A stretch of 64,000 nt of DNA, from assembly GCA_965240325.2 (NCBI GenBank), contig OZ251222.1, positions 930,001 to 994,000 of the forward strand, read 5' to 3'. The notes under the pieces are model-generated. The model saw only the letters and a program-made list of their open reading frames with translations. It ran no database searches and was not told the DNA's origin. The position numbers and the translations under genes are program-made. Shown here in pieces: positions 10,129 to 47,755 of this stretch (its first letter is position 1; each line of letters starts with the position of its first letter). The stretch comes from Rebecca billardiae RCC1528. Taxonomy: Eukaryota; Protista; Haptophyta.

Positions 10129-10535
10129 TATATCATCCTTACTTGATGTACGAGTAACGAGACGCACATCCCACATGCGCATGCGTGTGCAGCTGCACGC
10201 GGCACAACGACCCGAATCGGAATGCTCGGCCTCGCCGCGCCAACGCCCTGCGCGTCTCCGCGAGCCGACGCGCCGCACGCTGCCGGGCACGTAGCCGACG
10301 GTAGCCTGGCCGTCGTCGCCGCCGTGTCGCAGCGGCCAGCCATGCGCCATCGGACCTGCCCTCCGCGACCAGTGCGCGCGACGTGGTCGCTCGAGCCGCC
10401 CAGCCAGCAACGCGCGCCATCGCCGCACGGCCGGCAGCCCCTGGGGCAGACGCAGCGCGGCCGAGAGGGACGCGTCCGGGAAGAGGAGGAGCGGCGGCCG
10501 CGGCATGCTCGTTCGCGCGTGCCCATCGACGGCAG

Positions 10536-13500
10536 CTACAGGTAGAGGTCGCTCGAGCGATTGCCCCACGCCTGCCTGACGGCCTGCTTGCTGCTGTCCG
10601 AGAGCTTGTTGGATCTGGCGCCGCACGCGCGGCGTCACCCCGAGTCCGACACGCAGCCACGGCGCACGTGCGCGCACGGGAGGCGGCGCGGGGGCGGGCG
10701 GGGGCACGCGCGCGTCAGCCGGGGCGCCTGCCCGCGCCCGCGCGCGGCAGGTGCGGATGGGGGTGGGTGCGGAGCCGGCCAGCCGCCTCGGCCACATTGA
10801 CCTCACCGCCGACACGTGTGCGCGCGGCCCCGCCGCCCCCGGAACGCCGCCGCGAGGGCGGCGGCGAGGGGGCGGCGCGCGAGCGGCGCGCGCGGTGTAG
10901 CAGCGCCGCTGTCTCGCGCGCTCGTGCCGCAGCGCCGAGCGCGCCGCCTCCGCCCGAGCGCGTGCGCGCAGGTGCCGTGCGTGTGCGTGTGCGCGTACAT
11001 CAGGCCGAGCGTCTGCAGCGTGGTGTTGTGCTTGAGAGCGTCGGCAAGCGCAGTGCCCGAGGGGTCGCCCAGCGCGTTCGTACTGCACGGCGCAAGGGGG
11101 ACGGCGCGAGGCGCGGCGCGGCGGGGTGGGGCGAGGCGGCGCGCGCTCAGCGCCGCCGTCGCGCGCGCGCGGAGGGGCGGCGCGCGCCGGGCTCGACCCC
11201 GCGCGCACGGCTGCGCGCGCGCCCCGCCGCCGCCGGCCGCCGACACGTGTGCGCGCGGCCCCGCCGCCCCGACCGCCGCCGCGAGGGCGGCGGCGAGGGG
11301 GCGGCGCGCGAGCGGCGCGCGCGGTGCAGCAGCGCCGCTGTCTCGCGCGCTCGTGCCGCAGCGCCGAGCGCGCCGCCTCCGCCCGAGCGCGTGCGCGCAG
11401 GTGCCGTGCGTGTGCGTGTGCGCGTACTGCAGGTAGAGCGTCTGCAGCGTGGTGTTGTGCTTGAGAGCGTCGGCAAGCGCAGTGCCCGAGGGGTCGCCCA
11501 GCGCGTTCTCACTGCACGGCGCAAGGGGGTCGGCGCGAGGCGCGGCGCGGCGGGGTGGGGCGAGGCGGCGCGCGCTCAGCGCCGCCGTCGCGCGCGCGCG
11601 GAGGGGCGGCGCGCGCCGGGCTCGACCCCGCGCGCACGGCTGCGCGCGCGCCCCGCCGCCGCCGGCCGCCGACACGTGTGCGCGCGGCCCCGCCGCCCCG
11701 ACCGCCGCCGCGAGGGCGGCGGCGAGGGGCCGGCGCGCGAGCGGCGCGCGCGGTGCAGCAGCGCCGCTGTCTCGCGCGCTCGTGCCGCAGCGCCGAGCGC
11801 GCCGCCTCCGCCCGAGCGCGTGCGCGCAGGTGCCGTGCGTGTGCGTGTGCGCGTACATCAGGCCGAGCGCCTGCAGCGTGGTGTTGTGCTTGAGAGCGTC
11901 GGCAAGCGCAGTGCCCGAGGGGTCGCCCAGCGCGTTCGTACTGCACGGCGCAAGGGGGACGGCGCGAGGCGCGGCGCGGCGGGGTGGGGCGAGGCGGCGC
12001 GCGCTCAGCGCCGCCGTCGCGCGCGCGCGGAGGGGCGGCGCGCGCCGGGCTCGACCCCGCGCGCACGGCTGCGCGCGCGCCCCGCCGCCGCCGGCCGCCG
12101 ACACGTGTGCGCGCGGCCCCGCCGCCCCGACCGCCGCCGCGAGGGCGGCGGCGAGGGGGCGGCGCGCGAGCGGCGCGCGCGGTGCAGCAGCGCCGCTGTC
12201 TCGCGCGCTCGTGCCGCAGCGCCGAGCGCGCCGCCTCCGCCCGAGCGCGTGCGCGCAGGTGCCGTGCGTGTGCGTGTGCGCGTACTCCAGGTAGAGCGTC
12301 TGCAGCGTGGTGTTGTGCTTGAGAGCGTCGGCAAGCGCAGTGCCCGAGGGGTCGCCCAGCGCGTTCCGACTGCACGGCGCAAGGGGGTCGGCGCGAGGCG
12401 CGGCGCGGCGGGGTGGGGCGAGGCGGCGCGCGCTCAGCGCCGCCGTCGCGCGCGCGCGGAGGGGCGGCGCGCGCCGGGCTCGACCCCGCGCGCACGGCTG
12501 CGCGCGCGCCCCGCCGCCGCCGGCCGCCGACACGTGTGCGCGCGGCCCCGCCGCCCCCGGAACGCCGCCGCGAGGGCGGCGGCGAGGGGGCGGCGCGCGA
12601 GCGGCGCGCGCGGTGCAGCAGCGCCGCTGTCTCGCGCGCTCGTGCCGCAGCGCCGAGCGCGCCGCCTCCGCCCGAGCGCGTGCGCGCAGGTGCCGTGCGT
12701 GTGCGTGTGCGCGTACCCCAGGTAGAGCCGCTGCAGCGTGGTGTTGTGCTTGAGAGCGTCGGCAAGCGCAGTGCCCGAGGGGTCGCCCAGCGCGTTCTCA
12801 CTGCACGGCGCAAGGGGGACGGCGCGAGGCGCGGCGCGGCGGGGTGGGGCGAGGCGGCGCGCGCTCAGCGCCGCCGTCGCGCGCGCGCGGAGGGGCGGCG
12901 CGCGCCGGGCTCGACCCCGCGCGCACGGCTGCGCGCGCGCCCCGCCGCCGCCGGCCGCCGACACGTGTGCGCGCGGCCCCGCCGCCCCGACCGCCGCCGC
13001 GAGGGCGGCGGCGAGGGGGCGGCGCGCGAGCGGCGCGCGCGGTGCAGCAGCGCCGCTGTCTCGCGCGCTCGTGCCGCAGCGCCGAGCGCGCCGCCTCCGC
13101 CCGAGCGCGTGCGCGCAGGTGCCGTGCGTGTGCGTGTGCGCGTACTGCAGGTAGAGCTCCTGCAGCGTGGTGTTGTGCTTGAGAGCGTCGGCAAGCGCAG
13201 TGCCCGAGGGGTCGCCCAGCGCGTTCGTACTGCACGGCGCAAGGGGGACGGCGCGAGGCGCGGCGCGGCGGGGTGGGGCGAGGCGGCGCGCGCTCAGCGC
13301 CGCCGTCGCGCGCGCGCGGAGGGGCGGCGCGCGCCGGGCTCGACCCCGCGCGCACGGCTGCGCGCGCGCCCCGCCGCCGCCGGCCGCCGACACACGGCGG
13401 CGCGCGCGCCGGCCTCGCCCCACCCCGCCCCACCCGCGCGCAGCGCCCGCTCCCCCGGCCCGCGGCGCGCCACCGACGGCGGCAGCGGCACAGCGCGCGC

Positions 13501-15196
13501 ACACAGCGCGCGCGTGCGCGCGCTGTGCGGCGCACCTGAGAAAGAGCGTCCGCAGCGCGGGGCTGCCCTTGAGCACGCCGGCCAGCGCGCGCACGAGCTC
13601 CTCGCCGATGCCGGTCTTGTCGAGGTCGAGGAACACGAGCGCTTCGGAGGCGCGCACTAGGTGCAGCAGCGCGGGGCCGTGCTCCTTCACCACCGCCACC
13701 TTGCCCATCCATTTCGCCTCCGCGAGCTGCATGAGCGCCTCCGCCGAGGGCAGCCCCACTGCCCGCGCCAGCGCCTCCAGCTCCACCACCGTGATCACCG
13801 CTGCCGGGCGCGCGCTGCGGCGCAGCAGGGCCTGCACGAGCGGGTGCTTGGCCTGCTCTGCGCCCAGCACCCACTCTGCGGCGTCGCAGTCGAGGTAGCC
13901 GACGGGGTACGGCGCGCGCACGCGCCGCAGTGACGTGCTGGCCGCGACCGCGTCGGCGAGGGCCGTGAGCGCAGCGCCCGACGGCAGGACCACGAGGAGC
14001 AGCTCCACGAGCCCATCGGCGAGTCTCACCGTCGGAGGGCGCGCGCTGCGCTGCAGCAGGGCCTGCACGAGCGGGTGTGCGAGCTGCTCTGCGTCCAGCT
14101 CCATCACCTTGGCGTCGCAGTCGAGAACGCCGACGGGGCGCGGCGCGCGCACGCGCCGCACCGACTGGCTGGCCGCGACCGCGTCGGCGAGGGCCACGAG
14201 CGCAGCGCCCGACGGCACGAACGCGAGGCGCAGCTCCTCGATCGTGTCCGCCGCCAGCTCGTCGAGCGGCATGCCCTGCCCCAGCCGGAGCACGTACACG
14301 AGCGGGTTCATGCCCGAGCGCCACGAGGGGAGGAAGACTTTGGTCACGAGCTGCGCCAACGACGTGACCAGCGAGGCGGCGAGCACGTACGGGTTGACGG
14401 GGTACTCCTGCGCGTGCGTCACGAGCGCGTACTTGGCGAAGATGTACGCCTGCAGCAGCACCTGCGGCGTCGCTTCGAGCGCCGACTCGTACGCGATGCG
14501 CACCGTCGCGTACCACTGGAAGAAGGCTTCCAGCCGGCCGTAGTCTGCGGGCAGGCCGGCGCACGCGAGCAGCGCGCGCGGGATGTACAGCCGGTTGCGG
14601 TTGTACGCGCGCATGGCGAGGAGCACGTCGAGGCCGAGGATGCCCACCGGACCGAGGCAGACGGCGAGCATGAGCAGATTCTCCTCGTAGCCCAGGTCCT
14701 CGTCCTCGAGCACGCTCGAGCCGACGTAGCGGACGATGCCGAGCATGGTGGCGAGGCACTGCAGCGAGACGAACGCGGTAGTGAGAGACGCCCACCACGG
14801 GTTGCCCGTGCTGTACAGCTGCACGATCAGGTAGATGTCGAGCCCGGCGTCCGCGATGAAGGCCGTGTGCGACGCGACGCCGTGCAGGTACACGCCCGCT
14901 GCGAAGAGGGAAGGCACGATCACCCGAGCGAGCGACAACTTCGATATGAACTCTATCCACTTGGACCAGAGCGTGCGCGTAGCGCTACGCGGGCGGCGGC
15001 TGGACGATGGTGCGCCCGGCCCATTGTCGCGGTTGCTGAGCGCTGCCTCCGAATCGTCGCTCCGCGCCGCGTCGTTGTTGATGATCGGGGCACGCGGTGC
15101 GGCGTCGCTCCGCGCCGCGTCGTTGTTGATGATCGGGGCACGAGGTGCGGCCTCGACATCTTCGTTCCACGCGGAAGTTGATCCGCACGCGCCCAT
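10536..15196 (-). CDS. XK-related membrane domain + RI-like LRR protein, ~747 aa; exons 15196-13536, 13229-13146, 12800-12717, 12369-12286, 11940-11857, 11511-11428, 11082-10999, 10614-10536
   Basis: N-terminal MGACGS. XK-like motifs D.GLDIYL..LY..G.PWWASLT..F, ESALEATPQVLLQAYIF and SLVTSL. Six 84-nt phase-2 exons each encode a 28-aa repeat xNALGDPSGTALADALKHNTTLQxLxLx. All introns are GT-AG. The terminal exon encodes the cap SNKLSDSSKQAVRQAWGNRSSDLYL*. Spliced length is 2244 nt and in frame. Confidence 0.85.
10806..13393. repeat. Tandem array of six ~429-bp units (84-nt LRR exon + 345/347-nt intron)
   Basis: Exon starts are spaced 429, 431, 429, 429 and 429 bp apart, and the introns differ at only a few positions. 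Confidence 0.97.
13805..14217 (-). repeat. Older 231-bp (77-aa) internal coding duplication in exon 1 of the XK-LRR gene
   Basis: PSGAAL.ALADAVAAS.S.RRVRAP.PVG.LDCDA….L.AEQ..HPLVQALL.RSARP occurs twice. Confidence 0.9.
15054..15152 (-). repeat. 48-bp tandem duplication (AAPRAPIINNDAARSD x2)
   Basis: Seen in both DNA and translation. Confidence 0.9.
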
Positions 15197-15400
15197 GCGT
15201 ACGCGCGCGTGCGAGCCGTTTCGTCCGCACGGTCCTCGCCGGGGCCGATCGGGGCGCCGCCCCGAAGAGGCAGAAATGGAAAGTCGAGATCGGAGATCCC
15301 AACGAGTCAGGAGAGCTGCCCTCGTGCACACCTGTCCCTGCAGCTGTGTCTTTAAATTAGTCCACAGCACTTTCAACTTTACAGGTGCAGGCAGCCAGGC

Positions 15401-16589
15401 CAAGGGTAGTAAGGGTGAGCAACTCCGCTGGCGACAGCCGCGGAGGTCGGGAGGGCCAAGGGTGGTCAGGGTCGCCGACTCCAGCGGAGGCCGGCCCCGG
15501 AGCTTCGCTTCCGATTTTTTGCAGCGGCGCGGCGCGCTGGGCCGCCGCCGCTGTGGCGGGCCGCTCGGGGCGTGCACGGCGTGGGCTCGTGCGGCCGCTG
15601 CCGCGCACGCCGAGCGATCCGGCGCGGGCTCGCGGCTTGTCGATGGCCTCGCGCGCCGCAGCGCGACGCGCGCCTTGCCTAGCTTCGCCTGTCTCGCGCC
15701 TTGGCCGCCGTGCACGCGTGCGCCGCCAAACCGCAAGCTCGGCATACCTCTCAGCCGAGCGTGCACGTGCCTTGCGCGACGCGACGCGGGCATTGCCGCC
15801 AGGCGATGTAGCCGTAGTGCGAGCGCGCGCCGTGAAGCCTCGGCGCGGATCGAGAACAATGAAATGATGCCGCGTACGCGCGTGGACCGTCTGTTCGTTG
15901 AGCAGTGCTGAAAGCTGCACGACTGACTCTCTTGCCGGGGCGATCGTCACGTCGCATCGTCACGCAAGGCTCACACACACGTCATAGTGGCGTTCATCGT
16001 TTTGGCTACCACGCTCGACTAGTCTTCACGAGTCGCAGCGTCGCGATAGCCCATCGTTCAACGGAGGACCGTGATGTCCATTGGTGGTTGATGCGTCAGC
16101 AGTTGTCGACAGCTGACCGAGACGTTGAAGACACTCTCGATCCGCGCTGAGGCTTCACGGCGCGCGCTCGCACTACGGCTACATCGCCTTGCGGCAATGC
16201 CCGCGTCGCGTCGCGCAAGGCACGTGCACGCTCGGCTGAGAGGTATGCCGAGCTTGCGGTTTGGCGGCGCACGCGTGCACGGCGGCCAAGGCGCGAGACA
16301 GGCGAAGCTAGGCAAGGCGCGCGTCGCGCTGCGGCGCGCGAGGCCATCGACAAGCCGCGAGCCCGCGCCGGATCGCTCGGCGTGCGCGGCAGCGGCCGCA
16401 CGAGCCCACGCCGTGCACGCCCCGAGCGGCCCGCCACAGCGGCGGCGGCCCAGCGCGCCGCGCCGCTGCAAAAAATCGGAAGCGAAGCTCCGGCGCCGGC
16501 CTCCGCTGGAGTCGGCGACCCTGACCACCCTTGGCCCTCCCGACCTCCGCGGCTGTCGCCAGCGGAGTTGCTCACCCTTACTACCCTTG
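15401..16589. mobile_element. Non-autonomous foldback DNA transposon, P/Galileo-like
   Basis: 455-bp inverted arms (15401-15855 and 16135-16589, about 3 mismatches), termini CAAGG…CCTTG, and a 7-bp direct repeat GCCAGGC on both flanks (15394-15400, 16590-16596). Confidence 0.88.
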
Positions 16590-16866
16590 GCCAGGCACTC
16601 GCGCGGACGCCGAGCCTTGCGCGGGCGGAGTGCGCGTAAATACCGCCGTACCGGTAAGTAACAAGGGGCTTACAAATTGATGAGTACACCAGCTTGATCT
16701 TTCTAAGCCGCACCGCGGTACCGGTAGATGGTGGCTCACAAATTGATGAGTATCTACATACACGCTTCTTGATCCTTCTATATAACAAATCGAACCGCGT
16801 TCCTATTGAAATTGACTTCCTCTATTTCAAGCGGGTACATTTGATTACGGCCCGCGCCAGTCCGGT

Positions 16867-20388: not shown

Positions 20389-20518
<130 letters not shown>

Positions 20519-27608: not shown

Positions 27609-28476
27609 TAAGAGACGCACACAGCTCAGGCAGGCGAGATCTAGCAAACAGCGCGCTCGGTACGCCGACATGCAGTTTGAAACAGTATATGACCCATGCA
27701 CATGCGCACTTTGTCAAAACAATACGGCCCTTGGACCGGCGACCAAGTTTTCAACGTCGATGAGACGATGACTAAACTTTACTGACAATGGCACGCCCAC
27801 CGGTTAGTTATTGACTCACGTCCGGGCGCGGCTATTTCGTCAATCGCGTCTTGCTAATGGAGAGCAATGGGCCAATGTACGTATGTACCCCTCGAAAACG
27901 GAAAAAGCGAAAACTCACCCTCCAACAGCCCTCAAAATCGTCCCCCGTCCCCTATTCTTTGATCAATAGATCTTTTTGACAACGTAGTGAGGGCCCCCGG
28001 CGGGGCTCCACGCTACGCGCTCCGCCCTGCACCGCGGGCCACATAAGAGACGCACACAGCTCAGGCAGGCGAGATCTAGCAAACAGCGCGCTCGGTACGC
28101 CGACATGCAGTTTGAAACAGTATATGACCCATGCACATGCGCACTTTGTCAAAACAATACGGCCCTTGGACCGGCGACCAAGTTTTCAACGTCGATGAGA
28201 CGATGACTAAACTTTACTGACAATGGCACGCCCACCGGTTAGTTATTGACTCACGTCCGGGCGCGGCTATTTCGTCAATCGCGTCTTGCTAATGGAGAGC
28301 AATGGGCCAATGTACGTATGTACCCCTCGAAAACGGAAAAAGCGAAAACTCACCCTCCAACAGCCCTCAAAATCGTCCCCCGTCCCCTATTCTTTGATCA
28401 ATAGATCTTTTTGACAACGTAGTGAGGGCCCCCGGCGGGGCTCCACGCTACGCGCTCCGCCCTGCACCGCGGGCCA
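27609..28476. repeat. Tandem duplication, 2 x 435 bp, apparently identical
   Basis: Constant 435-bp offset. Each unit starts with the dispersed TAAGAGACGCACACAGCTCAGGCAGGCGAGAT motif. Confidence 0.95.
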
Positions 28477-43725: not shown

Positions 43726-43757
<32 letters not shown>

Positions 43758-46700
43758 CGAGCCCGCCGCCGCCAAACCCGCCGCCGAGCCCACCGAGCCC
43801 GCCGCCGCCGTCGACGCCGCCGCCGAGCCCGCCGCCGAGCCCACCGCCGCCCACCCCGCCGCCCTCTCCGCCCTCCTCGCCGCCGCCGCCGAGCCCGCCG
43901 CCCGCGCCGTGCTTCCCGGTCGACATCCCGCACGCGCTGGTCTGCAACTACCAAGTCTCGGGCACGACGATGGGCGCGCCGCAGTTCGACGGGCAGATGC
44001 GGCGCTCGCGCTTCTACAAGGTGAGCGCCGACTCGCTCGGCATCAGCGCCGGCTCGCGCATCACCGTCAACTCGTGCGACACGCTCTTCCCGCACTCGCT
44101 GACGGTGCACGCCGACTGCCCGTCGCGCTCGACCTCGCGCGTGCTCGCGCCGGGCGCCGACGAGGACTACGCTGCGCACACCTCGTCCTACTTCACCGAT
44201 TGCACGTCCGCGGCGCGCGGCGCGAGCTTCAGCCTCCTCGCCAGCGTCGACTACTACGTCGAGATCCGCGGCGACGACGTGGACGGCCCCTTCAAGCTCG
44301 CGATCCGCGACTGCCTCAAGCCGAGCCCGCCGCCGCTGCCGCCCAGCCCGCCGAGCCCGCCCAGCTCGCCGCCCAGCCCGCCGCCCAGCCTGCCGCCCAG
44401 CCCGCCGCCCGGACCGCCGCCCAGCCCGCCCAAGCCGCCGCCCAGCCCGCCGCCGCCGCCCAGCCCGCCCAAGCCGCCGCCGCCGCCGCCGAGCCCGCCC
44501 GCGCCGCCGCCGCCGTGCGGCCTTGCACCGGTCAACCGCGGCGGCACGCTCCGTTGCGACAGCGGCTACGTGCGCGGCTCGACGGAGGACAACGTCGGGA
44601 CCGGCAACTCGTACATCCACTGGTACCATGTCAACACGGAGAGCGCGGGCGGCGTGCTGCGCGACAACGGCGGCGTGATGGCCGTCGACTCGTGCATCTC
44701 CGACTACGACACGTGGATCGACATCTTCCGCGGCTGCCCCGGCGGCAACGGCGAGCTGATCGAGACCAACGACGACCGCGGTGATTCACTCGCAGGGTGC
44801 GACGACCTCAGCTCACGCGCCACCTTCCAAGTCGAGCCGGGCGTCGACTACTACATCCGGCTGTGGGGCTTTGGGACCAACGAGGGCAAGTACACGCTGC
44901 AGGCGCTCTGCGGTATCTCACCCAGCCCGCCGCCGCCGCCGCCGCCGCCGAGCCCGCCTCCGCCGTCGCCGAGCCCGCCGCCCCCCCCCCCGGCGCCGCC
45001 GAGCCCGCCGCCGAGCCCGCCGCCGCCAAACCCGCCGCCAAGCCCGCCCGAGCCGCCGCCGAGCCCGCCGCCCAGCCCGCCGCCACCCAGCCCGCCCAGC
45101 CCGCCGCCCAGCCCGCCGCCCAGCCCGCCGCCGCCCAGCCCGCCGAGCCCGCCGCCGAGCCCGCCGCCGCCACCCAACCCGCCGCCGCCGCCGCCGAGCC
45201 CGCCGCCGCCGCCGCCGAGCCCATCACCGCCGCCGCGCGCGTGCGAGTACCGATCGTTCAACCCGGGCGGCGCGCTGCGCTGCGGCGCGACCGTGCGCGG
45301 CGACACGCGCAGCGGCGTCGACCGCGGCGGTGGCGCGTACGAGATTGGGCGCGAGCACGTGTACCGCTTCACCGCCGCGTCGCTCGGCTCGCCGCTGGGC
45401 ATGCGCGTCACCTTGGACACGTGCGGCTCGAGCGAGGACACGGCGCTCCAGCTGTGGCAGGGCTGCCCCAACGCCCCGGGCGCGGTGTCGGTCGCGCTCA
45501 ACGACGACGACAACACGGACATCCGCTGCAACGGCATGAACGCGCGGCTGACGGCGCCGCTTGCCGCGGACACCGAGTACTACCTCGTGGTCGAGGGCCG
45601 CGCCGCGTACCAGGAGGACGGCTGGCCCGCGCTCGTCGAGAACCCGGCCGGTGGCACCTACTTCAACAGGGCCAACGGCCCCTACGCGCTCACCGTCGTC
45701 GACTGCGAAGCGCCGCCGCCGCCGCCGAGCCCGAGCCCGCCGCCGCCGTCGTGCGGCGTCTCGCCGCTCAACCGGCCGCGCCGGCTCAGCTGCAGCGAGC
45801 GCGTCGTCGGCGCCGCGCCGCCCGCCGACCAGCCGCTCTTCTTCTCCTTCACGGCGGCCGAGCTTGGCGCCTCGCTGCTCGGGCCGGGCGCCGCCGCGCC
45901 CATCGAGCTGTTCGGCGCGCTGGACACGTGCGGCTCCGACTTCGACGCGAACCTCGAGCTCTACGCCGGCTGCCCGACCACGGCCGGCACGCTCGTGCGC
46001 CGCCGCAGCCTCGGCTCCAAGTGTGGCGCCGACGGCGCGCGCATCGACTTTACCTTCGAGCCGGGCGTGACCTACTACGCGCGGCTGGCCAACGCGGACG
46101 GGCGGATGGGAGGCAACTTTGAGCTGCAGATGTGTAACTGCCGCGTGAACATGCCGCCGAGCCCGCCGAGCCCGCCGCCGCCCGCCCCACCGAGCCCGCC
46201 GCCGCCGTGCGGCTTCTCCATCGGCATGGGCGCGCCGCTCCGCGTGTGCGGCAGCGCGGTCACGGGCAACACCGCGCGGCCGGGCGCGACGAGCATCCGC
46301 GGCAGCGAGGCGAACGACGGTTTCCACCGCATCGACACGCGTTTGATCGGCACGGCCGCGATCACGCGCGTGACGCTCGACCTCTGCTCGCCGGGCTTCG
46401 ACCGCCCCGGCGCGCGCTTCGACACGGTGATGCGGCTGTGGAAGGGGTGCCCGCGCACGGGCTACGTCGTGGAGCAGGTGGCGATGAACGACGACGACTC
46501 GACCGACGAGCGCTGCAACGGGCGCAACTCGCGCCTGCAGGTTGCGCTCGAGCCAGGCGAGATGTACTGGGTGCACGTCGAGGGGTTCGGCGGCGAGGAG
46601 GGCGCGTACACGCTCTCGCTCCTCGACTGCGCCGTGCCGAGCCCGCCGCCCAGCCCGCCGCCGCCGCCGCCGCGCCCGCCGCCGAGCCCGCCGCCGCCCT

Positions 46701-47755
46701 CGCCATCGCCGCCGCCGCCGTGCGACATCCAAATCCAGGCTCGGCTCGGCTGCGGCGCGGTGCGCACCGGCTCGACGGTTGGCGCGAGCAGCCTGTGGGG
46801 CAACGCCGGCGGCGAGCACTTCTTCGCCTTCTCGTCCGAGGAGGCGGGCGCGGTCTTCGCCAACTCGTGCGGCTCCAGCTTCCAGTCCTTCCTCCGCGTG
46901 TGGGACCGCTGCCCGCACCAGGCCCTGATCGACAGGGCCGGGCCGGGCGGCGCGGCCTGGCACGCGGAGACCGAGATCCAAGAGTGGCGCCGGCGCGGCT
47001 GCGCCGCGCTCAGCTTCGACACGGTCCCGGGCCGCACGTACTACGTGCAGGTGGAGGGCTGGGAGGCGCGCGAGGGCAGCTACCGGCTCGAGCTGAGCTG
47101 CACGCCCACCTCGCCCCCGCCGAGCCCGCCGAGCCCGCCGCCCACGCCGGTCTGGCAGCGCGCGCGCCGCGTGCGCGTGCGTTCCTCACTCACCGTCGAG
47201 GGCGACCTCGCAGACTTCACGCCGGGCACGCCGCTCGGCGACCGCAACATCCTGCGCATCCGCCAGGCGTACGCCGACTCGCTGCCCAAGCCGCTCGAGG
47301 CGGTCCTCTTCGCGGGCGCCACCTCGGGCTCGGTTCGGCTCAGCCTGGACGTGCTTGACGCCGACACGGGCGGCGGCAGCGCGCTCGCCAGCCTCATCGC
47401 CAGCAAGGCGGCCGAGATCCAGGCGGAGGTGCAGACCCAGACGGGGTACACCGTGCTCGCCGCGGCCTCGGTCGACGAGGTGGAGGTCGAGGGCGTGGAG
47501 AGCGGCTCGTCGTCGTCGGGCGGCTCGTCGTCGTCGTCGAGCTCGTCGGGCGATGGCGGCTCGGGCTCGTCCGCCTCCACCGCCACCATCGTCGAGGACG
47601 AGGCCGGCCTCTCCGCGCAGACGGTCGGCGTCATCGTCGGCGTCGTCGTCGGCGTCGTCGTCGGCGTGCCGTGCCTCTGCGCCATCGGCTACTTCCTGCA
47701 CAAGCGCCGGCAGGCGAACAAGGTCGCGCCGGACGCCAACGCCGGCGCCGCCTAG
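43235..47755 (+). CDS. Type I cell-surface protein: signal peptide, seven Cys-bracketed PPC-like beta domains separated by SPPP linkers, C-terminal TM helix
   Basis: MQLRAAALSALVAGASA leader; repeated D(T/S)C.S.(F/Y)DT.L.(L/V)W.GCP…NDD…Y(Y/W)V.VEG…G.Y.L; TM segment VGVIVGVVVGVVVGVPCLCAIGYFL followed by HKRR. Single 4.5-kb ORF. Confidence 0.88.

Follow-up and report, generated by a model that had tools for sequence, protein, structure and literature searches.

In a 64,000-nucleotide (nt) window of the genome of the haptophyte Rebecca billardiae RCC1528 (contig OZ251222.1, positions 930,001 to 994,000), we identified a minus-strand gene whose predicted product joins an XK-related membrane domain to six tandem leucine-rich repeats (LRRs), each encoded by its own exon; we refer to it as the XK-LRR gene, and all positions below are those of the window. 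The data support an interpretation of the six repeats as a binding array that was built by recombination and is diversifying. Our preferred explanation, to which we assign a probability of roughly 65%, is a repeat array that is homogenised in the germline while diversifying selection acts on its binding face; it would form the ligand-binding part of a membrane protein. Ligand binding, and any immune role, we infer by analogy with the receptor designs compared at the end of this report.

Tandem Repeats Finder (TRF) placed one tandem array at 10806 to 13393 on the minus strand, with a period of 429, 6.0 copies and 97% matches. It resolves into six units of 429 or 431 bp, each made of an 84-nt exon and a 345- or 347-nt intron (internal introns 1 to 5 measure 345, 347, 345, 345 and 345 nt), and each exon encodes one 28-residue LRR of the ribonuclease-inhibitor (RI) type. 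The exon borders are identical in all six cases, with gtgcag on the acceptor side and gtacgc on the donor side. Each exon opens with the last base of one split codon and closes with the first two bases of another, so that the introns are in phase 2 on both sides. The parts of the array and its flanks are as follows.

10806 to 13393, minus strand: tandem array, consisting of a 164-nt upstream-intron tail, six exons, five internal introns and a 193-nt downstream-intron head; its ends are the limits of intron homology
13230 to 13535, minus strand: upstream intron, 306 nt, with 164 nt at its 3' end that recur as the 3' part of each internal intron
13146 to 13229, minus strand: LRR cassette exon 1, T N ... 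LQELYL, ending in CA
12801 to 13145, minus strand: internal intron 1, 345 nt, with the junction microhomology at 12955 to 12964
12717 to 12800, minus strand: LRR cassette exon 2, E N ... LQRLYL, ending in GG
12370 to 12716, minus strand: internal intron 2, 347 nt, carrying the head variant of the downstream intron
12286 to 12369, minus strand: LRR cassette exon 3, R N ... LQTLYL, ending in GA; a variant of this unit occurs in sequencing run X1
11941 to 12285, minus strand: internal intron 3, 345 nt long
11857 to 11940, minus strand: LRR cassette exon 4, T N ... LQALGL, ending in AT
11512 to 11856, minus strand: internal intron 4, 345 nt long
11428 to 11511, minus strand: LRR cassette exon 5, E N ... 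LQTLYL, ending in CA
11083 to 11427, minus strand: internal intron 5, 345 nt long
10999 to 11082, minus strand: LRR cassette exon 6, T N ... LQTLGL, ending in AT
10615 to 10998, minus strand: downstream intron, 384 nt, beginning with 193 nt that recur as the 5' part of the internal introns; against intron 2 they show 1 mismatch
10536 to 10614, minus strand: terminal exon encoding the C-terminal cap, (I)SNKLSDSSKQAVRQAWGNRSSDLYL and a stop; the cap motif ...QAW is shared with P0001, the nearest relative found

The intron position cuts the variable strand of the repeat (LxxLxLx/xN), and the spliced strands read, in order, LQELYLHEN, LQRLYLGRN, LQTLYLDTN, LQALGLIEN, LQTLYLHTN and LQTLGLISN. The initial annotation of this stretch had given the same unit structure and the same six strands, and both readings were borne out. 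All predicted junctions have canonical GT-AG sites, and at every one of them the motif LxxLxLxxNxLxD is rebuilt, six reading LQxLxLxxNALGD; the spliced domain moreover aligns contiguously over the junctions to the LRR domains of LRR_6-bearing relatives, with E-values down to 5.5e-41 (P0004) in a comparison against 22 family proteins. Exons have a GC content of 65-68% and a coding-like codon-position bias, and introns one of 86-87%. From these sequence features we infer that the predicted splice sites are used. Coding read-through of the introns was rejected on their GC content, the absence of exon-like codon-position bias and the frame shift introduced by the 347-nt intron, and open reading frames (ORFs) on the plus strand across the array were set aside as Arg/Ala-rich artefacts of GC content. 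An Rfam scan of positions 10300 to 15400 returned no known RNA that could account for the conservation of the introns.

Because the exons are symmetric and in phase 2, every rearrangement or exon skip stays in frame, which agrees with the initial description of the units as in-frame modules. This raises the question of whether alternative use or skipping of same-phase exons is the main source of diversity, as has been proposed for the Ectocarpus ROCO genes. The six exons share identical splice sites, a skip would pair strand positions 3 to 7 of one unit with position 8 of another, and Ectocarpus LRR cassettes have been reported to yield splice variants (PMC11378527). A search for RNA runs, however, listed none for the gene, and a DNA pattern spanning the spliced junction gave 0 matches in the metagenome and transcriptome contigs of the Joint Genome Institute (JGI); the genomic exon-plus-donor pattern likewise gave 0 matches in metagenome_contigs. 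We regard combinatorial splicing as an unlikely main source, though one that is compatible with our preferred explanation.

Variation among the six exons is confined to exactly 8 of 84 columns, which are the first and second bases of four codons, those for positions 3, 5, 7 and 8 of LxxLxLxxN, and every difference is non-synonymous. The other 76 columns are invariant, as are all 28 third positions; the third bases are fixed across the assembled units, including a non-preferred T. Consequently 24 of the 28 residues of the unit do not vary, and repeat identity is 85.7-96% over 168 residues. The internal introns, for their part, differ at 3 substitution columns of 347 and by one 2-nt indel. Mean pairwise difference is thus 67.5% at the 8 variable columns, 6.4% over the whole exon and 0.41% in the introns; variable columns are enriched in exons relative to introns (Fisher p = 1.5e-4), and at least 14 changes in 8 exon columns against 3 variable columns among 347 in the introns amount to an approximately 200-fold excess per column. 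The probability that the 8 columns fall on the pre-specified set by chance is 2e-11. The codon-restricted pattern is real and far beyond chance, and it upholds what the initial annotation had claimed: exons identical except at four codons, introns differing at only a few sites, and exons more divergent per base than introns.

These figures also decide the case of a young neutral duplication, in which recent copies would carry unselected differences. The near-identity of introns and scaffold does indicate that the copies are recent or homogenised; neutral change, however, would hardly place all of its at least 14 events in the eight pre-specified columns, and the distribution of differences already refutes this reading. 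A further comparison comes from within the gene, where an older 231-nt (77-residue) duplication in exon 1 shows ordinary repeat divergence, with 79% nucleotide identity and changes at all three codon positions; the codon-restricted pattern is therefore special to the array. We mapped the variable residues onto the strand from the exon-1 LRR in the AlphaFold2 (AF2) model and textbook LRR geometry. In this modelled arrangement, positions 3, 5, 7 and 8 would project from the concave sheet and from its ascending loop. This supports a restriction of the variation to x positions of the LRR strand that face the solvent, which the initial annotation had placed on the concave binding face. Two couplings among the variable codons were also observed. 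In four of the six repeats the position-3 codon equals the position-8 codon of the same LRR, across the intron (GAG/GAG, CGG/CGG and, twice, ACG/ACG; permutation p = 0.034), and positions 5 and 7 are coupled, GGC occurring with AT and TAC with CA, GG or GA.

The origin of the array can be read from its introns. Over its last 164 nt, every internal intron is 100% identical to the end of the upstream intron. The first 193 nt of internal intron 2 match the first 193 nt of the downstream intron except at one base, and the blocks share 10 nt of microhomology, GTGTCGGCGG (coding strand), where they overlap. Each internal intron is a chimera of a downstream-intron head and an upstream-intron tail, an observation that is new in this analysis. 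Since the intron homology ends exactly where TRF sets the limits of the array, at 10806 and 13393, the array was founded when a single exon was duplicated through breakpoints in the introns on either side of it. This gave a 431-bp unit, and the chimeric introns indicate that the array grew from one exon through unequal recombination located in introns. The 431-bp unit retains the variant of the flank, and the 429-bp unit, with a 2-nt deletion and one substitution, is derived; the derived type now fills four of the five introns and flanks the ancestral type on either side, a distribution that requires additional cycles of unequal exchange or conversion. The nearest relative found, P0001, is colinear in alignment and shows a single LRR in place of the six of the XK-LRR gene. 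These results bear out the earlier proposal of recombination in the introns in so far as it built the array. When the window was examined for paralogous copies of intron and exon, as the initial annotation had suggested doing for the genome, the 64 kb contained none besides the array. A mobile intron or introner was accordingly rejected as the source of the repeats, given the lack of another intron copy in the window and the chimeric make-up of the intron from two local flanking introns.

We propose the following course of events. An ancestral gene would have carried a single LRR exon, of 84 nt, flanked by exon 1 and the terminal exon; the two introns beside it would have recombined, unequally or illegitimately, at their 10-nt microhomology and so created the 431-bp duplicon. 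Repeated unequal crossing-over or gene conversion would then have expanded it to six units while holding the introns and 76 of the 84 bases of each exon close to identity. Against this homogenised background, substitutions would accumulate only at positions 3, 5, 7 and 8, most likely kept by diversifying selection for new binding specificities. Diversity would then arise in the germline over evolutionary time, through point changes at four codons per repeat and through changes in the number and order of units. The case is unusually readable, with the junction kept in the introns, a nearest relative that has a single repeat, and 8 saturated bases set against a near-invariant scaffold of 2.6 kb.

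A repeat that is near-identical across 2.6 kb invites the suspicion that the array, or at least the number and order of its units, is a mis-join of paralogous or allelic reads. Independent reads came from run X1, the only run that holds parts of the locus, in short contigs at a depth of about 2. Three X1 contigs match the window without any difference. A fourth, of 264 nt, covers exon 3 and both of its intron flanks (window 12142 to 12405) and is identical at 257 of 264 nt; its 7 differences all lie in or directly beside the variable codons, and it encodes S N ... LQRLWL, a further (seventh) unit variant that may be an allele or a paralogous unit. This contig repeats the codon-restricted pattern independently, and such a pattern is not producible by a mis-join. 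It is also the lone contig that crosses an exon, and at the variable codons it matches none of the six assembled units, which counts on the side of an artefact. Against one, the units carry distinct variable codons and intron markers (the 2-nt indel and three substitutions) in consistent register, the ends of the array fit the unique flanking introns exactly, and reading frame and splice sites are intact throughout. We therefore hold an assembly artefact to be quite improbable.

The variant in X1 bears on a second question, namely whether the four codons are diversified by selection or by mutation aimed at them. A programmed or targeted process, mutational or templated, somatic or germline, could rewrite the first two bases of the four codons, with an outcome like that of diversity-generating retroelements or of lamprey cassette copying. 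The near-saturation of 8 bases beside a remainder of 2.6 kb that is about 0.4% diverged or less is what such a process would leave, as are the many codon pairs that differ at both first and second base, the third bases that stay fixed in the assembly even where they are the non-preferred T, and the agreement of position-3 and position-8 codons described above. The X1 variant, however, alters two third-position bases, changing TAC to TGG at the position-5 codon and T to G in the preceding split codon, so third bases can change. The changes at the variable codons cover all transition and transversion classes, which is unlike the work of a deaminase. The 64-kb window contains no other unit copy, donor cassette or template, and a limited scan of five coding-like ORFs in it (a NAD-binding protein, a Yip1 protein, a tetratricopeptide repeat (TPR) protein and two without a Pfam match) found no reverse-transcriptase or deaminase domain. 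The fungal and brown-algal precedents, moreover, are explained by selection with concerted evolution, and nothing positive was found in favour of a targeted mechanism. In a very large population, many selective fixations could occur while neutral sites diverge by only 0.3-0.4%, and selection could then produce the same ratio with no need of an extra mutational mechanism. The homogenised introns are valuable here as a built-in neutral yardstick for telling selection from targeted mutation. On this evidence selection appears to be the agent at the four codons, and programmed diversification seems very improbable, somewhat more so than an assembly artefact.

Several points nevertheless weigh against selection on a homogenised array. 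For homogenisation to spare 8 interleaved bases, the array would have to be very young and to have undergone many sweeps, or else conversion would have to be very fine-grained, and a mutational mechanism aimed at these codons retains a small probability. The synonymous divergence (dS) is 0 in the array exons, so a formal dN/dS ratio is not computable. The comparison covered the six units of one assembly, which is also the source of their number and order. To these we add the negative transcript results given above.

Spliced as predicted, the XK-LRR gene encodes a product of 747 residues, of which exon 1 contributes the larger part.

13536 to 15196, minus strand: exon 1, 553 codons plus 2 nt, starting MGACGS and ending ...LRTLFL, then AG followed by gtgcgc; GC content at third codon positions 0.91
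14351 to 14878, minus strand: XK-related membrane domain, residues 107 to 282, matching Pfam PF09815 with 34.1-34.6 bits against a cut-off of 24.8, at model positions 4 to 171 of 337
13806 to 14241, minus strand: the 231-nt (77-residue) duplication in exon 1, made of LRR-like strand-helix modules, located by TRF, with 79% nucleotide identity between the copies and alternating strands and helices in the AF2 model

The exon 1 product is 50% identical to P0001, and its only Pfam match is to the XK-related family, with no ROC-COR, NACHT or NB-ARC match. Its N-terminus, MGACGS, fits the N-myristoylation pattern (G2, S6) and has a cysteine open to palmitoylation; because this agrees with the established consensus, the protein is probably acylated. 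The AF2 model, with a mean predicted local distance difference test (pLDDT) score of 72.5 and 10-residue block means of 77-95 across the helical domain, consists of a helical membrane domain followed from about residue 320 by alternating strands and helices. In a Foldseek search with this model, human XKR8 (8xej, 7dce) ranked first and second and rat XKR9 (7p16) thirteenth, with probabilities of 0.99-1.0 but E-values of only 0.08-0.33 and a template modelling score by target of 0.35. Its resemblance to the Xkr scramblases (XK-related proteins XKR8, XKR9 and XK; PF09815) lies in a family-model score above the threshold, with XKR8 and XKR9 as the leading structural hits; it departs from them in that the match covers just the first half of the model and the structural scores are weak. 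Read from its N-terminus, the protein would consist of a probable acylation site, an XK-related membrane domain of several helices, LRR-like modules, the six RI-type LRRs of the array and a cap at the C-terminus.

The assignment of the array repeats to the RI type rests on several comparisons. The 28-residue unit has an LxxLxLxxN/CxL strand followed by a helix, as in RI-like LRRs (LRR_6 class). A single 27-residue exon matched Pfam LRR_6 with E = 0.12, under the cut-off because the exon is so short, and a profile of the six units matched the RI-like LRRs of LRRC34 and tropomodulin in PDB (E = 2e-4). LRRs of the RI type are mostly cytosolic.

Relatives of the protein are few. A HMMER search over 1.84 billion representatives returned only 22 at E <= 0.001. 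P0001, the nearest relative found, lies on a 1.9-kb JGI contig that resembles a transcript. We scanned the query and 21 of the 22 relatives (22 sequences) against Pfam; 16 matched XK-related and 7 carried LRR_6, and single members had ankyrin, pentapeptide/decapeptide or filamin repeats, which indicates that the XK-like membrane domain has repeatedly been joined to repeat-type binding domains. The LRRs of the relatives diverge along their full length, unlike the near-identical scaffold of the XK-LRR gene. Protein searches with other queries were less productive. A read-through ORF with four LRR exons gave no match, its candidates probably having been dominated by GC-rich intron words, and a 40-residue region around one unit gave none either, the unit being present in no 317-1008-residue protein of the searched collection. 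At two loci in Logan contigs of 70% GC (L002 and L003), an XK part and an LRR part are adjoining ORFs, and each pair is probably one gene split by an intron or a frameshift. Another relative, P0017 (891 residues), consists of about fourteen near-identical 55-residue repeats, has weak similarity to the 77-residue module of exon 1 and is a further case of a repeat protein with high internal conservation.

Animal Xkr proteins are not known to carry an LRR domain, and a full-text literature search combining XK-related, leucine-rich repeat and alga returned no paper. As speculation, a sensor LRR coupled to a membrane-perturbing domain would make an attractive receptor-executioner design. At its fullest, this idea would make the array the sensor of a new receptor-executioner, in which a diversifying LRR surface sits on an XK-type lipid-scramblase domain and recognition leads to membrane changes or regulated cell death, with codons or exon usage possibly programmed and the gene belonging to a genome-wide repertoire of cassette LRRs; taken together, these claims strike us as a long shot, less probable than a leading role for alternative splicing.

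Other repeats were seen in and around the gene. The second copy of the 77-residue duplication in exon 1 is absent from P0001, and in the coding N-terminus a 48-nt tandem repeat (15055 to 15155, 2.1 copies at 96%) doubles a 16-residue stretch (…APRAPIINNDAARSD…) in a low-confidence region of the AF2 model. About 200 nt upstream of the start codon is an inverted repeat (15394 to 15855 and 16135 to 16596; 462 nt, 99% complementary, 279-nt spacer), which could be an inverted duplication or a hairpin-forming promoter element. Elsewhere in the window are a (TA)52 microsatellite (20392 to 20495), a perfect (100%) tandem duplication of a less GC-rich 435-bp unit (27609 to 28476) and, at 43726 to 47140, several kilobases of CCG-rich short-period repeats that are possibly proline- or glycine-rich coding sequence.

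Among known systems, the initial annotation had named Ectocarpus and Podospora as parallels, and both comparisons proved apt: the former shares the phase-2 exons and the same four positions, the latter has four selected codons in its WD repeats. The LRR-ROCO genes of the brown algae Ectocarpus and Saccharina have one LRR per phase-2 exon and tandem exon duplication, and a variable recognition function has been proposed for them (Zambounis et al. 2012, PMC3341825; Teng et al. 2024, PMC11378527); positive selection was found at sites 14, 16, 18 and 19 of their 23-residue repeat (PMC3341825, PMC11378527). Renumbered here, those sites are strand positions 3, 5, 7 and 8, at which the array varies too. 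Both also have a single LRR in each exon, exons of constant length and symmetric phase 2, and evidence of exon duplication or shuffling. The array differs in its exon (84 nt and a 28-residue RI-type LRR, against 72 nt and a 24-residue LRR of the plant-specific type), in its partner (an XK-related membrane domain instead of ROC-COR), and in having almost identical introns and scaffold, an intron that cuts the variable strand and a founding junction that can still be read. The Ectocarpus genome has a GC content of 50-55%, and that of the array is much more GC-rich.

The variable lymphocyte receptors (VLRs) of lampreys and hagfish offer a somatic counterpart, in which an incomplete germline gene is filled in by copying from donor cassettes that flank it, with the involvement of cytidine deaminases. 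VLRs resemble the array in their LRR modules with variable concave-face residues, assembled in varying number and order; unlike a VLR, the XK-LRR gene is complete in the germline and has no donor cassettes within 64 kb.

Fungi offer a further parallel. In Podospora, four selected codons vary in otherwise homogenised WD repeats (Paoletti et al. 2007, PMC1805685), and repeats of high internal conservation (HiC; WD40 in HET-D, HET-E and NWD proteins, ankyrin, TPR) are defined by at least 85% identity over at least 100 residues, their binding surface carrying about four hypervariable codons in each repeat (PMC1805685; Dyrka et al. 2014, PMC4986451). The array falls within these bounds (85.7-96%, 168 residues) and also has about four hypervariable codons per repeat. 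It differs in that its units are LRRs, each split by a likewise homogenised intron, and, unlike the fungal NOD-like receptor (NLR)-like proteins, exon 1 has no NACHT or NB-ARC Pfam match. The array does not show the C-to-T signature of repeat-induced point mutation (RIP), which has been proposed as a source of mutation in fungi. Homogenisation by unequal crossing-over or conversion, with diversifying selection preserving differences at ligand contacts, is established in Podospora (PMC1805685, PMC4986451) and proposed in brown-algal ROCO genes (PMC3341825, PMC11378527). By analogy with both, the array is best read as a design like the brown-algal ROCO cassettes and the fungal HiC repeats with a new partner domain and a new LRR class; it would thereby extend two known designs of fast-evolving receptor to another alga, to another class of LRR and to a partner domain not described in such a role.

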